From Hyaloraphidium curvatum SAG 235-1 (Eukaryota > Fungi > Monoblepharomycota), in assembly GCA_025558095.1 (NCBI GenBank), contig JAIVFI010000020.1, forward strand, positions 248,001 through 312,000: DNA of 64,000 nucleotides. Reading direction: 5' to 3'. Of the stretch, positions 1 through 7,405 are shown one piece after another. How positions within the stretch are numbered: position 1 is the first letter of the stretch; each line of letters opens with the position of its first letter. The position numbers and the translations under genes were made by a program. Under the pieces are notes generated by a model. The model did not search any database. It was not told the origin of the DNA and saw only the letters and a list, made by a program, of their open reading frames with translations.

Positions 1-1351
1 GCCTCCCCACCCCCACCCCGGTTGTCCTTGCCGACCCTGCCCACCACGTCATTGCGCCCCCCCAAGTGACGCTGCTCCATGCCGCCTGCATGATGGCGGC
101 CGTCGCCGCCCTGTTCGCACTGGACGCTGCGATGGACTGGCTGGCTGAGGTGCTCGGGGTGAGCGAGGAGGTCGGCTGGATGGGTGCCGTTGCCCGTTGG
201 GTGGGGTCGGCGGCGTCCCGGGTGCGGGAGTGGGCGAGGAAGAATATGGGCTGCCGGGCACGCAAGAACGGCGGATTTCCGGTCGCTCAAGTCGTCACAC
301 GCACCCTAGCCGCTTCGGCCGCCGTCATCGCCATCTTGGCCGCGATGAGGCGTGCACTGGGCGGATCCGTGACCTGGTCCAACCTGACCGACGCGGCCAT
401 GCTCCTCCCTATCGGCTTCTTCACCGTGACGATGCTCCAGTGGATCCAGGCCGATTCGGCGCCCCGCAAGAGCAAACAGCTTCGCCTTCTGCGCAGGTGC
501 AGGACCGCCAAGATCCTCAAGCCCTCCGCCGCGCCGCCCGGATTCGTCAACGTCGCCACCGCGACCGGACTCGTATTCGTCGCGGCGTTTGCGTACATTC
601 TGTCCTCTCCGTGGTTGCATTCGTTCCCGTTCGACGCCGGCGTCTCCATCCTCGTCGCGGCAGTCTTTGCCTTCGCCGACAGCCAGAGATGGCACAAGTC
701 GGACACAACTGGCCGCTGGATCTCGGACGTCAGGATGACCGTCGGCGACTGGGTGAATGTGTTGTCAGATCCGTGCCTCGTAACCTTTCGCAGCGTGCGC
801 GCCCACGTGAGCGAGGCACTGGAGCGGGAGCGCAAGCTACGCGGCCTCTCGCTCGTCGCACCGAACCGCCATGCCCGCCGGCGCACGACGCGCACGGCGC
901 GCGGCCTCTCTCGCCCAAGGCTGCTGCCTCGGGCGCCGCGATGCCGCCTGCTCTTGGCCGTCGCTCTGGGAGTGGTCCGCGTGCTCTTCGGCGCGCGGTC
1001 GCTGGTCGGTAGCATCACTGCGCTGGCAGCGCACGTGCTCGAGACCCTGTGGAGCTGGGCGGCCGAGGAAGGACAGAAGGCCGGCCCGCCGACGGTCCCT
1101 GGTGCCTGGATGGACACGGACGAGGGGCCAAGGCAGCGCCTTACCACTCTGCTCACCGGTAGGCACATGCACTCGGGTCGTTGGCAGAGCGTTCTGATCG
1201 ACGTCGTCCACTGAAGTCAAGGAGATCAACTGGTTCGTCCAGTCCGCCGCGCAACAAGGCTCCGACCACGATCAACTTGCACGCACCTTTACCTACCCCG
1301 CCTTCGCGGTTCAGGACAGACGCCTTTCTCATTGGCTCACGGGTTCGTCTA
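1..1351 (+). CDS. Hypothetical multi-pass membrane protein, 5'-partial; a late exon is interrupted by Fanzor element A
   Basis: The frame of ORF 66-1214 is open back to the window start and has several hydrophobic segments. Intron 1159-1216 (GTAGGC...GAAG) continues the frame as VKEINWFVQSAAQQG...WLTGSS up to the TA at 1350-1351. The frame resumes after 5085 (RIFIVAPQYG, then a GTGAGT donor). Confidence 0.5.
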
Positions 1352-4300
1352 TTCCGCTTCGGGCCACGCGCATTCTGATGAAATGCCCACAGTGGACCAG
1401 TTCCTCGCCGCCAAGCTGTGCCGCGCGTGGCTCCGCGCCCCGTGGGACGACGCCGCGCAAGCCTGGATGTCTGTCCCTGCGGCGGCGCAGAGCCGCTCGA
1501 CCCGGCGGCGGCGGCGCAGGCAGTTCGGACTCTTCCTCCGCCCCGTACTCGCGCTTGCCACAAGGACGGCTTGGCTCGCCAACGAGGCAACGCTGAGCAT
1601 AGATACGCAGACTGCGGAGCTCAACGGCGAGAATCCTGTGCTTGGAACGGACGACCTCCCGCCGCTGTGCCGCAAGACCCGCGAGGTCATCTTGGCCGAA
1701 ATTGCATTCCTGAGCGCTCCCAGCAGGTAGGCCACGGTGCTGTTGGCCCTTGGGGCGTCGGTCCTCATTCGTACCGTTTCGAAAGGCAAGTGCCCGGCTC
1801 CGAGGGCACGGCCAAGGGCAAGGGCAAGGCCAAGGCACCTCCTGGAGGAGCGGACGGAGATGGGTTGGAGCCGCCGCCGAGCAAGGTCGGCAAGGTGTGC
1901 GGAAGATGCGGGGGGGCCGACCATGAACGGGCCAGCAACAGGCTGTGTCCGTATCACAAGCCCACCATCAAGGCGACGGCGAAGAAGGACGTCGAGCAGG
2001 TTATTAGGGCCGTCGACCATCAAGCTCCCCCTTAAGGGCCTCTGCACCTCGTCACCCGCGTCTTTCGCATCTGTCCACGACACGCTCGCGCTGGCCTACA
2101 CGCCCATGGCAATCGCCGCCGCGCTGCTGCTCAACGAGGGCGTGGCGGCCTGGGTCACGGAGAACCGCGTGCTGCCACAGCTCAACCAGTCGCTGTTGCG
2201 CCGGGTCTTTTTCCTTTGCGCCTCCGGGGAGCTACGCATTCAGGCGAGCGATTCCTTACAGGGACAGGAAGAGTTCTTGCGGTCCTTAGAGCGCATCTGG
2301 CTTGGAGACGGTGGCACACCGGGTCTTCGGGCGAGCTACCCGGCGCGCTTTGCGGCGTTTCGGGCTCCAGGGGCTCGGGGGAGCGCGTCGCCGAACCGCA
2401 TGATCGACCAGTACTTCAGCTCCGAGTTCGACAACATCTACAACGCGACGTTCAAGGACTATCAAGTCAACATCGAGGTGCACCTGGAAAGCGCGGCGAA
2501 CCGCAACTTCAAGAAGCTCGCCGAGCTCCGGTTCTACAAGCTTCCCTGGTGGAACGCGGTGGTGGACGGCGACCCGGAGAAGGAGCTCCCTGCCGAGCGC
2601 AAGTCGGCGATCTTTGCAAGCCTCCTTTCCGCCAGCAAGAGCCGACGCCGGCCCCTCAAAATCTTCAGCCGCACCGCCGCGGCCGGGGATCATTACCTGA
2701 CGGAGCAGGACGTGGAGCTGGCTGTTGCCGCTGGCCAGTCTCTGACATACGGCTGGAAGACGCCGTCGATGCAGCATCACCGAAGCGCTGTGCTGGGGCC
2801 ACACTTTCTGGAGGCGCTGCTGCGTGATGTCCGCGCCGGGCGCGACCTCCACGTTTCCATGCGAGGGGAATTTGCGTCGTGGTTCGAGGAGGAGTTCGAG
2901 ACGATTATGGAGACCGTGGTGCTCAACAAGGTGGCGAGGGCGCAGCTGGCCAAAGACCTCGTGGCCCGCATCACGAGCACCGGTGCGCACAAGTTCAGCG
3001 CGCGGCACATAGCGTTGGGGGAAGGTCCGGCCGCCATCCCCTGGGATACATTGCAGGCCGCTGCGAACACCGGAAATGGCCTTCTCCTGGACCGTCGGGC
3101 GGGCAAGACGGCGGTCGTGCGGGACAGGCTGCAGCACGCCACGATTGTCCAGCTCGTTACCTTCCTCCAGGAGGCATGGGGACATCAAAACGATATCGAA
3201 AGGAACGGGATGCAAGGCGGCGTGAAGGACTGGAACACGCGGCTACGGTTTCTGCACAGGTCGAACTGCCTGATCGGTGCTCTCTATGACATTACCGTGC
3301 CTGCCGGGCCCTTTGATCCGCAGTGGCAGCCGCCCTTGCCGCCCACCTCGGCCCTCCTGCCCTACTTCAACTACCAGACCAAGCACGTCAAGGTCGCTAC
3401 ATTCGATGCGCTGCTGGAGGTTGTGAAACGCCACAAGCGCATGTTTCCCGCCGAGCACGCAGCCGTCATGGACGACCACTTTCCGTTCGGGGAAGAGTTT
3501 GACGAGACCAACGAGTACCACCGGCGGCGTCTGTGGGCTGCGGTCTACGATACGGACAGCCTGCTGCAACGCGAGGTCCGAGGCGGCTTCAGGGACAACT
3601 ACGTTGGGGACAAGACGCGCGCCTTCGCCTTCGCCGTGTCCTCCAATGGTGTCGAGGCTTCGGTGCTTTTCAACAAGGCGGTGCCTAACGACGACTTCGA
3701 GCCGGAGGGCGAGGCTCGCGAGGCCGGTGGTGCGGATGACGAGGCCAGGATCGTCCGCGAGGCCGCCGCCGCTGCCTTCCACGCGGGCCTACGCAGGGGC
3801 ATGGAGCGGGCGGTGCAGTTCGAGGACCAGGCGAGGCGCGGCGAGATCAAGCTGCACGTCCAGGGTCTGGACCCCGGACCGGGCGGCTTCACGCTGGCTC
3901 GGCGCACGGAGGATGGCGAGGCTCGGAGCAAGGTCTTCTTCTACTCGTTCAAGCAGTATCACTACGAGTCTGGCGTGACAAAGCGCCAACGGCAGCAGGA
4001 AGCCCTAACAAAAGCAATGCACGTGACCACGGCCGCCGGGCCGGTCTCTATCCAGACTATCATCAACGCCATCCCCGCGAGCACGATCACCGCCGTCGAC
4101 GCCATCCACCGCCGCAACACGTACATCCTCACGCATCTCGACACGCTGGTCGGCTTCTACAGCGAGTTCCGGGACGAGCGTTTCCAGAACTACCGCGGCA
4201 AACAGATCGCCCTCGAACGCATGGCGCAGGAGCTGCTCGCGATGGAGCATGAAAGCAAGACCGGTTCGCCGAAAACCGCGGAGACCAAGGCGGCGCGGCG

Positions 4301-5083
4301 GAACCGGAAGGGCTGGCGCCGGTGGTTCAGGAGCAAGAGGAGGAAGCGCGCCGGCGGAAATCGTCTGCCGGAGCGCTACGTGATCGTTTGGGGTAACGCC
4401 AAGGTCGGCAGCATGTCCTGGATCAAGAAGCAGATGCGCGGCCCGTTCAAGAAGCTCATCGCGCTGCTGGAGGCACGGCCCGACGTCGTGGTCGTCATGG
4501 AGGACGAGTACGGCACGAGCAAGTGCTGCCACTCGTTCGACCAGTGGAGCCTGGACACGCGGAGGTGCCGGCAGATGCTCAAGGAGCTGGAGCCGACGTA
4601 CCGGCCTCCGGTGGTGGCGGAAGGGGAGCAGGCGGAGGAGCGCAAGTGGCACGTACCGATGGTCATCCCGACCAAAAAACCCTGGTATGTGCGCTGGTGA
4701 GTGTGCTGGCTTCTGCTGCTTTTCTCGATCTGACGCCCGCAAAGGTGCTTCAACCCCGCCTGCCCCGTCGACCACATCCACCGCGACGTGAACGCGTCGC
4801 TGAACATGCTCCGCCTTTACGAGTGGCGCCTCTGGCAGTGGCGCACGGCGCCGGGGATCGACGTGGAACAGACGGGGCGGCCCCCCGGCCTGAGGCGCTT
4901 GTCGTAGAACTGCACCCATCATCTGGGTAACCCTCAACTCTTCAGAACTCCCATCGACCGACGGCGGCTCGCGAGGGCTGGCATACCCTAGGACCGAGCT
5001 CGGTGAACGATGGGATCTCATTGGCCGCTTACAGTCGGGATTCTCGAGGATCTCAGCATTCCGATTTGTAGTTGGAAGCGGAA
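1352..5083 (+). mobile_element. Non-autonomous Fanzor1-carrying DNA transposon (element A) with inverted termini and TA target-site duplication
   Basis: CTATTCCGCTTC (1349-1360) is the exact reverse complement of GAAGCGGAATAG (5075-5086). TA occurs at 1350-1351 and 5084-5085, and the reconstructed empty site is gtCTAGga. The interior holds only the Fanzor gene and a structured 3' region. Confidence 0.8.
1383..4907 (+). CDS. Fanzor1 RNA-guided endonuclease (TnpB/Cas12-like RuvC), about 1,140 aa, with N-terminal CCHC zinc knuckle
   Basis: RuvC-I VQGLDPG (D 3870-3872), RuvC-II VVVMEDEYGTSKCC (E 4506-4508) and RuvC-III HRDVNASLNM (D 4785-4787, reached after intron 4697-4744). Also SSNGVEASVLF, YHYESG, VGFYS, IVWGN and a terminal GRPP. 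Intron 1727-1785 leads to CGRCGGADHERASNRLCP. There is a frame discontinuity near 2000. Confidence 0.9.
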
Positions 5084-5102
5084 TAGGATATTCATCGTTG
5101 CG
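4908..5102 (+). ncRNA. Putative omegaRNA of Fanzor A (scaffold to about 5085, guide from the right flank)
   Basis: Stems: ACCCA 4914/TGGGT 4924; TCCCATCG 4949/CGATGGGA 5008 enclosing ACCGA/TCGGT, GCTCG/CGAGC and AGGG/CCCT; CCGCTT 5025/AAGCGG 5076 enclosing TACAGTCGGGAT/ATTCCGATTTGTA. The region overlaps the right inverted repeat. Confidence 0.7.
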
Positions 5103-5184
5103 CCTCAGTACGGGGTGAGTCAGCGGTGCCGCCCTGCCTTTCCCTGAGCTCAAACACCACACGCTTTCCGTGGACCTCGCACAG

Positions 5185-5227
5185 AGAGCATAGCCAATCA
5201 CGCTCACATAGAGCACAGCCAATCACG
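5185..5227 (+). promoter_or_regulatory. Tandem 18-nt repeat, each copy containing a CCAAT box (AGCCAATCA), just upstream of the HSP20 ATG
   Basis: AGAGCATAGCCAATCACG at 5185-5202 and AGAGCACAGCCAATCACG at 5210-5227. Confidence 0.3.
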
Positions 5228-6222
5228 ATGCCCGTGCCCGCAAACGAGCCGAGCGGCACAAGTGCCTACGCCCCCGTCAAGCCGAGCGACCAGGCGCGCG
5301 AGGCGGCGACCCGCGAAGCCGCCGCGACGGACGCCACCAAGGAAGCAACTGGCCTCATCTCCTCCATGATGAGCTCACTTCCTACCCTGCCCCGCTCGAA
5401 GGACGAATTGGTGGGCGCCATGCCTCCCGCCACGTCACGTTGCCTCACGCCCCACGGAATGGGACAGCTGCAGCAAATCAACCAAATCGAGAGCAACCTC
5501 AAGGCCTTCTACGACGCGATGATGGCGGAAGCGCAGCGCTCGTACCCCGAGCAGCTGGACAAGCTCAAGGGCATCGCCGCGGCGGGCATGGCCAACATCG
5601 AAAGCCTCCGCAACAGCATCCCGACCACGCTCGAGCAGGCCAAGGAGCAGGTCCAGGGCCAGACCAGCAGCTGGAAATCCTGGCCGAGGTGGGTCCGAAA
5701 GCCCCCGCACGGACCCGGACACGCAGCTGACCTCCCCCCAAAGCGACCTGCACACCCAGGCAGCCGCCAAGTTCCCCGTCCTCGGCACCCTCGAAGCCCA
5801 GGCCACCAACGTGCTCGCCAACGTCCCCCGGCTCGGCAGCGGGATCGCCTGGGCGCCCACGGCGGACCTGTTCGAGGAGGAGGGGGCGTTCGTCGTCGTG
5901 CTCGACCTGCCGGGCGTCGACAAGGGGAGGGTCGGGGTGTCGATCAAGGGGATGATGCTCACGGTCGAGGGGACGGTCGATCCGCGCCAGGGCGAAGCTG
6001 GGACGGCCCGCATGCAGGAAAGGAGGTGGGCGATCGCTGGTCCTGTGCGCTTCTCGATTTCTGAGCATCTGTCGCAGGAGCGGCAAGTTCTTCCGCTCCA
6101 TCGCCATCCCGGCCGCCGTGAGGGACGAAATGGCCGAGATCACGCTGGACAAGGCGGTGCTGGAGGTCCGGATGCCCAAGAGCGCCGCGGTCTCGGCCGG
6201 GAAGCAGCCCGTCAGGGCCTGA
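5228..6222 (+). CDS. Small heat-shock protein (HSP20/alpha-crystallin domain) with a long N-terminal extension; multi-exon
   Basis: WAPTADLFEEEGAFVVVLDLPGVDKGRVGV...ERR|SGKFFRSIAIP...LDKAVLEVRMPK; about three short introns. Confidence 0.8.
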
Positions 6223-6274: not shown

Positions 6275-7213
6275 TCACCGGCTGCGCTTCTTCTTCTTCG
6301 CCGGTTTCGGCACCGAGTCGTTGGCCGCGATCCTCACCCCGGCGTCCACGAGGTGTTGCACGATCCGGGCGATGTTGCGCGCGTCGTCGATCCCGCAGTG
6401 CGGTTTCCCCGCGAACGTGAGTCCCAGGTTTGTTAGCATTCCGTCGAGGTTCAGCCGCGGAGTCTTGCGCGCCTCGGAAAAAGCGGTGCGGAGGTCGCAC
6501 CACTCGTTCATGAAGCGCGGCCGCTTGATCTTGGAGGTCAGGCACTGCTTCCGGAGAAAGTCGCGCAGGTCCCATGGCCCGTCGGTGACGAAGAGGATGT
6601 TCTCAAAGCCCGGGGTGGGATCGAACGTCCGCAGCCACGACTGGAAGTCCTCCAGCACGGTCGTGAAGGGCGGCGCGGCGTACACCACGTCCTGCGTGAT
6701 GCCCGTCAGCTTCACGCAGAATTCCGTCAGTTCCGGCTTGACCGTCGGCCGCACAAAGGAGCGGAATTCGGCCACGACGGCGTTGGTCCGCCCGCAGAGC
6801 AGGACCACGGGCCATTCGATGATCTCGTTGTCGTAGTCGAAGCCGCGGTTCTCTTCGCAGGTGGCCTCGACGTCCAGCACCGCGAGGAACTCCCTGGAAT
6901 GCCGCTTCTCCGAGTCGAGTCTGGTTCGTAACAGCGTTTCGATCCGCGACCACTCCTCGTCGTCGAAAAACTCTGTTCCGTCCGCCCTTCGCGGCCTTTG
7001 ATCGGTGGTTTCCTCTTCCAACTGGTCGGTCGGAGCCTCTGCAGTCTCGTTCAGCTCCGGTGCGGCCGGTGTGCTATTGAGCTGGGCTTCCAGCTTTTTC
7101 CTCTTCTTCTTGAGCCATGTCTTCAGTGTCCGCTTATTGCCCCTGCTCTCCAGGCCCAGATCCTGAAGAGTCTCCCGGAGATGGACGACTGGAGGCGTGG
7201 CCTCGGCCTCCAT
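6275..7213 (-). CDS. ERI1: ERI1-like 3'-5' exoribonuclease (SAP domain + DEDDh)
   Basis: SAP-like LRETLQDLGLESRGNKRTL; LAVLDVEATC, EIIEWP, TDGPWDL and PHCGIDDARN motifs. Confidence 0.85.
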   Translation of the reverse strand: MEAEATPPVVHLRETLQDLGLESRGNKRTLKTWLKKKRKKLEAQLNSTPAAPELNETAEAPTDQLEEETTDQRPRRADGTEFFDDEEWSRIETLLRTRLDSEKRHSREFLAVLDVEATCEENRGFDYDNEIIEWPVVLLCGRTNAVVAEFRSFVRPTVKPELTEFCVKLTGITQDVVYAAPPFTTVLEDFQSWLRTFDPTPGFENILFVTDGPWDLRDFLRKQCLTSKIKRPRFMNEWCDLRTAFSEARKTPRLNLDGMLTNLGLTFAGKPHCGIDDARNIARIVQHLVDAGVRIAANDSVPKPAKKKKRSR

Positions 7214-7405
7214 GTATGGGAACGGCGTGGACGGTGCCCGGAGCCCGCGGGCCCCGAATCGCGCTCGCGGCGCGATGCAGCAGAGCCGCGGAAGCTGCCG
7301 AAGAATCTTTAGAGCGCAGGCCGGCCCGGCATCCGCAAGCACCGCGGGAAGGTCGTGCGTTGTTGACGCCCACGCGTCATCACTGGTGTCTCCCGGCCTT
7401 CCGCC

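Follow-up and report, generated by a model that had tools for sequence, protein, structure and literature searches.

The window analysed here is a 64,000-nt stretch of contig C20 of Hyaloraphidium curvatum, an early-branching fungus. Close to its left end, a 987-aa open reading frame (1737-4700) resembles an RNA-guided nuclease, and the question is what kind of element carries it and whether the copy is complete and functional. The initial annotation described a complete Fanzor1 element at 1352-5083 with an intact catalytic triad. In our reading, to which we give a probability of roughly 80%, the locus is a degenerate copy of a DNA transposon of the Tc1/mariner-IS630 type that is young and non-autonomous and inserts at TA, and its passenger is an oversized Fanzor1.

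Profile searches, structural models and RNA contigs supported the assignment to Fanzor1. The 987-aa frame contains GLDPG (D3870) and DEYGTSKCC (E4506), as first described. Removal of a 48-nt intron at 4697-4744 (+; GTGAGT...CTGAC...AAG) adds a last exon that translates to CFNPAC...HRDVNASLNM...GRPP and carries D4785. This intron is spliced in an RNA contig (a skip of 48 with a GT..AG joint) and in the NCBI model P0004, and the three triad codons read D, E and D. In Fanzor1, the glutamate of RuvC-II stands six residues before the first zinc-finger cysteine, and the motif D-X(125-275)-[TS][TS] is found (PMC3627910, PMC10711439). Here, E4506 is followed by six residues and then C4527, and the D-to-T distance is 215. 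GLDPG aligns with the DP of SpuFz1 and has the DPG of the RuvC-I motif (PMC10711439), and the RD of RuvC-III (D4785, in exon 5) lies within the 5-50 residues after the finger that are expected of a Fanzor1.

When the 987-aa frame and P0004 were searched as single sequences with phmmer, neither had a significant match in the PDB or Pfam; the Fanzor identity is detectable by profile or fold only. A profile of the relatives (A1) matched SpuFz1 (E 1.4e-16), PpFz1 (2.4e-12) and a mimivirus Fanzor2 (7.8e-5). The fold evidence comes from a C-terminal model of the window copy (P0004; pLDDT 78) and a 948-residue model of a sister protein (P0003), and SpuFz1 was the top Foldseek match for both (E 1.4e-8 and 1.7e-10, respectively). 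The sister model reached a VIA Z of 17-20 to Fanzor1 structures, with 6.7 as the next best, and its WED-REC-RuvC-TNB fold is closest to Fanzor1, not to Fanzor2, TnpB or Cas12. In the C-terminal model of the window copy, the first D of the triad falls where a strand ends, the E in the loop behind a strand and the second D where a helix begins (pLDDT 89-94), the kind of positions at which RuvC catalytic residues are found (PMC11423790). About 460-500 residues align to Fanzor1 structures, and ~350-400 residues of the model are unaligned with SpuFz1; the latter are insertions, apparently mostly in REC. The description of a protein larger than SpuFz1 with extra inserted segments is in line with this (a core of ~1,030 aa vs 633 aa). 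Between most pairs of copies, dN/dS of the core is 0.2-0.33.

The element itself is larger than first described. Four dispersed copies are present in the genome (C20, C18, C2 and C12), 95-97% identical, and their alignment runs over 6.9 kb, from C20:246160 to window position 5083. The element is 6,924 bp long (G000:C20:246160-253083); its left end lies 1,841 bp outside the window, of which it occupies 1-5083 (+). It is bounded by 25-bp imperfect terminal inverted repeats (TIRs) with 21 of 25 positions matching; the right one lies at 5059-5083 (-) and was matched to the left TIR in C18. TA flanks both ends of all four copies (5084-5085 on the right side in the window), as expected of Tc1/mariner-IS630 elements, and the left flanks read TTA, GTA, TTA and TTA. 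No DDE transposase lies inside: none of 38 DDE_3 matches falls in the four copies. In the C12 copy, ~120 bp are inserted into the left TIR (G000:C12:399820-399961), with repeated GAAATC.

Of the two ends first proposed, the right one (5083) stands and the left one (1352) does not. A complete 3.7-kb element inserted into a host exon had been suggested by a perfect 12-nt inverted match flanked by TA (1349-1360/5075-5086). However, 1352 and the left arm of this match sit in an intron that is spliced out (1343-1392), and the sequence common to the four copies continues for a further 3.2 kb to the left. The true TIRs differ, the 12-nt match is absent from the ends of the sister copies, and it needs a C>A change that is private to the right end of the window copy. 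The match is accidental, and the 3.7-kb element, refuted by the copy alignment, retains practically no probability.

The 6.9-kb copies are mosaics: exon 1 of the C20 copy is near that of C2, and its core is nearer to C18. This patchwork points to gene conversion or recombination among the copies, but is not proof of Fanzor-driven repair. No ghost elements were found by a DNA or TIR-pattern search of the genome. On its right side, the element ends ~30 bp before the RNA-supported 5' intron (5114-5184) of a neighbouring small heat-shock (HSP20-like) gene at 5226-6222. A further open reading frame at 6275-7342 (-) resembles an ERI1/DEDDh 3'-5' exonuclease in its motifs.

Copy comparison and RNA contigs gave a structure of five exons. 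The ATG of exon 1 is at C20:247793 (208 bp to the left of the window), and the exon extends to 1158 (1-1158 in the window, +). It encodes a hydrophobic orphan region in which about six segments look membrane-like, is open in all four copies and is present in the NCBI models P0034-P0035 and the database protein P0033. Intron 1 (1159-1216, +; 58 nt) is removed in P0033 and P0035, and the loose end of an RNA contig joins 1158 to 1217; a 1-nt indel between copies falls within it. Exon 2 (1217-1342, +) and exon 3 (1393-1726, +) are supported by RNA contigs and copy comparison. Intron 2 (1343-1392, +; 50 nt) is spliced in the NCBI models and in two RNA contigs joining 1342 to 1393. The start codon first assigned to the nuclease (1383) is inside this intron, and the window copy does not yield the proposed length of ~1,140 aa. 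Intron 3 (1727-1785, +; 59 nt) is retained in the NCBI models and removed in a C12-type RNA contig with the joint 1726-1786. If it is kept, a TAG at 1728-1730 ends an upstream protein of ~600 aa; if it is removed, exons 1-3 join the Fanzor frame.

Exon 4 starts with a basic low-complexity linker and a CCHC-type zinc knuckle (CGRC...H...C) at 1786-2004 (+), for which alignment A3 gives the true frame. The Fanzor1 body follows at 2013-4696 (+), with WED, the enlarged REC, RuvC-I, RuvC-II and the first zinc-finger pair (C4527; F4536). After the 48-nt intron 4, exon 5 (4745-4907, +) supplies the second zinc-finger pair (C4746, C4761), RuvC-III, a C-terminal RP motif and the stop codon. The three sister copies are open over all five exons, from the ATG to 4907, which amounts to 1,624-1,633 aa as the summed lengths of separately translated exons. 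All frame-changing indels between copies are intronic, except one at 2005.

This exception belongs to the window copy. It consists of a net 8-nt deletion with a complex scar (2003-2012, +), private with respect to all three sisters, through which the frame with the zinc knuckle stops at 2033-2035. As a result of the deletion, the first ~92 aa of the 987-aa frame are a wrong-frame reading: they have no match to the relative P0002 (best E 12), whereas the zinc-knuckle frame matches it with an E of 5e-11. An 8-nt intron at 2000-2007 was considered and rejected as too short. An assembly error at 2005 could produce such a frameshift, but the change is a complex replacement and the copy has two other private lesions, which argues against an error. 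The zinc finger is altered as well. Its first pair reads CHSF in the window copy (Phe at 4536) and CHSC in the sisters, and close relatives all carry Cys at this second ligand. The C4 finger and the open frame are both lost here and both present in the three sisters. The Phe lowers the likelihood of an intact protein, but not that of a Fanzor1 origin. The ends are damaged, too: the terminal C>A in the right TIR is private to the window copy, and the left repeat has a 3-nt duplication.

Given the frameshift, the zinc-finger Cys-to-Phe change and the damaged ends, the window copy is probably a pseudogene and most likely makes no working nuclease. It could still encode a working core if translation began at ATG 1859 or 1923 (brought into frame by the frameshift) or at a private ATG at 2106 and a neighbouring Cys or His replaced the lost ligand. 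The body is open from 2013 to 4907 with the triad present, NCBI annotates an 819-aa protein at this copy, and the first ligand does vary in relatives (His in P0007, P0008 and P0010). However, the spliced transcripts begin far upstream, so that the first frame ends at 2033, and it is the second ligand, invariably Cys in close relatives, that is lost. Moreover, the body has 12 private replacement changes vs 13 silent ones, and no contig diagnostic for the window copy was present among the RNA contigs listed. The corresponding values are 5/18 in C18; C12, however, has 9/1, so that the private changes are no clean test. Taken together, a working core is very improbable. The word 'intact' therefore does not apply to the window copy, nor can this frameshifted copy serve as the ~1,140-aa candidate nuclease; the candidates for activity are its sisters.

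A separate question, apart from the main reading, is how the hydrophobic region relates to the nuclease. About six stretches of 19 residues are hydrophobic in the upstream region, and its GC3 is 0.83, as in the core. Its membrane character over ~600 aa is a prediction, and GC-rich frames favour Ala, Val and Leu. Without splicing of intron 3, the ~600-aa region would be translated by itself; with splicing, it would form the N-terminal part of a ~1,630-aa protein. The intact sisters may make a ~1,630-aa Fanzor1 with a ~600-aa multi-helix, membrane-like N-terminus, and intron 3 may act as a switch that gives just the membrane protein when retained and an RNA-guided nuclease tethered to a membrane when removed. 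We regard this as a tentative and rather unlikely proposal. In favour of a fusion, the intron-3 joint is found in a deep contig (depth 1,365), and every junction keeps the frame in three copies.

The hydrophobic frame may instead be a separate passenger gene, with the Fanzor made from its own shorter transcript and the intron-3 splice being minor, a possibility that we rate a little short of even. NCBI splits the locus in this way: a protein of 602-646 aa terminates at the TAG of intron 3, and a Fanzor of 981-987 aa follows, but the start ATG of the latter sits in intron 3 and is missing from C18 and C20. The relatives P0002, P0008 and L061 begin just before the knuckle. The splice junctions were seen one by one, and no listed contig spans exon 1 to RuvC. 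In exon 1, only in-frame indels occur across the four copies; dN/dS in this exon is 0.5-0.8, and under neutrality the absence of stops would by itself arise with P=0.12. No relatives of the exon 1/upstream protein outside the four copies were found in length-limited searches of the protein database, Pfam, the ESM Atlas and the host genome, a result that does not establish novelty, and exons 1-3 had no Pfam match. The metagenome relatives and a second H. curvatum family (family 2, below) showed no match to exons 1-3, several of the contigs being too short to tell.

As to mobility, the analysis found no transposase that shares these TIRs. A relative encoding P0006 (45% identical; L061) lies just downstream of a DDE_3/HTH_Tnp_IS630 gene, and one copy of family 2, on C15, is continuous with a DDE gene. 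Because of these two cases, mobilisation in trans by an IS630/Tc1-type transposase appears likely. From known Fanzor1 biology, a transposase of this type elsewhere in the genome would move the element. The omegaRNA would be transcribed from the right end and ~15 nt of the flank, and the protein of the intact sisters would cut DNA at a TAM ending in TA (mostly TTA, to judge from the left flanks) followed by the guide. The target would be the site emptied by excision, and the element would be restored by repair that uses the sister chromatid.

Work on other Fanzor1 elements (PMC10432273, PMC13565253) leads one to expect an omegaRNA that takes in the right repeat together with TA and continues into ~15 nt of guide, and a TAM formed by the left flank, which ends in TA. 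The candidate omegaRNA scaffold of the window copy would span 4908-5085 (+), with a predicted terminal hairpin at ~5017-5085 that includes the right TIR and TA. As the right end is so close to the 5' intron of the HSP20-like gene, the predicted guide overlaps the upstream region of that gene. The 178 nt after the stop codon fold into hairpins with a z of -1.4, not beyond chance when compared with shuffles, and predicted omegaRNA folds had z of -0.4 to -1.6. Five lineages have in common a TGTA...AC-T end and a short closing stem; one of the four closing-stem pairs is compensated, and the stem was not significant vs shuffles. Rfam contained no real match for the right-end RNA. A sister-type RNA contig runs to 5082, although contigs cannot show small-RNA ends.

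Relatives of the core were found in metagenomes and in the same genome. The metagenomic proteins P0002, P0005, P0006, P0008, P0013 and P0015, together with family 2, are 29-51% identical and share the insertions, the knuckle and the last-exon intron region. As the metagenome relatives (941-1,082 aa) have the same insertions, the large core marks a subgroup. Family 2 comprises three TA-flanked Fanzor1 copies (C7:327850-334140, C21 and C15; L024-L032) with 35% protein identity to family 1, the family described above. It has a different, low-complexity and intron-rich N-terminus and His as the first zinc ligand. Its C15 copy follows an interrupted IS630/Tc1 DDE transposase gene, an intact-looking relative of which (822-aa frame) is located on C5. 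Both families share the TIR core and a 640-bp upstream segment (~75%). This segment (L013:7000-7640, ~1,000-370 bp before the window) is shared at 74-87% with family 2 and loci on C37, C3 and C5. Apparently non-coding and more conserved than the proteins, it might be a promoter or a cis-element of a transposon. The genome contains at least six more Fanzor-like families, at ~25 loci on many contigs. In a 10-copy family (~99-100% identical, ending in TA) and a 5-copy family, a DDE_3 transposase lies ~7 kb upstream of each on the same strand.

Most Fanzor1 proteins have 600-700 aa (PMC11423790), and sizes of up to ~800 aa are recorded (PMC10711439). The enlarged subgroup, with a core of ~1,030 aa or half again the usual size, is apparently undescribed; a literature search returned no publication treating both Hyaloraphidium and Fanzor. 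Introns and nuclear signals were already known in Fanzors (PMC10530073). No Fanzor with such a membrane-like N-terminal module was found in the literature examined, and the spliced module, should it prove real, would place or restrain a Fanzor in a new manner. The subgroup includes recently mobile, transcribed and intact copies whose TAM can be predicted (TA at its end, mostly as TTA) and whose guides are defined, which makes it directly testable. The insertions in REC could change specificity. The large size is a drawback for an editing tool, and the window copy is the wrong one to test.

Fanzor1 proteins are known from mariner/Tc1-IS630 elements such as PGv-1, PUl-1 and PUl-4 (PMC3627910). 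The H. curvatum element is like these in its TA duplication and TIRs, and L061, its nearest relative, combines an IS630-type transposase with a Fanzor of the same subfamily behind it. In contrast, family 1 has no transposase, and the orphan hydrophobic frame lies at the position of the transposase of L061. Another close counterpart is Spu-1 of Spizellomyces punctatus, a 2.1-kb element with one 633-aa open reading frame (SpuFz1; PDB 8gkh, 9ceu-9cez; PMC3627910, PMC10432273). Both are multicopy and non-autonomous without an internal transposase, have TIRs of ~25-30 bp, a TA duplication and a short region from the stop codon to the right end, and share the Fanzor1 fold and motif order. The H. curvatum element differs in its length of 6.9 kb, its five exons, the ~1,030-aa core, the N-terminal zinc knuckle and the ~600-aa hydrophobic extension. 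Structural identity to SpuFz1 is 11-17%, ghost copies were not found in H. curvatum, and the window copy is broken. Compared with PpFz1 (9cf0) and GtFz1 (9cer; PMC11423790), the Z scores were 20.1 and 18.5 over 458-493 residues, and PpFz1, like the H. curvatum Fanzor1, also carries an insertion.
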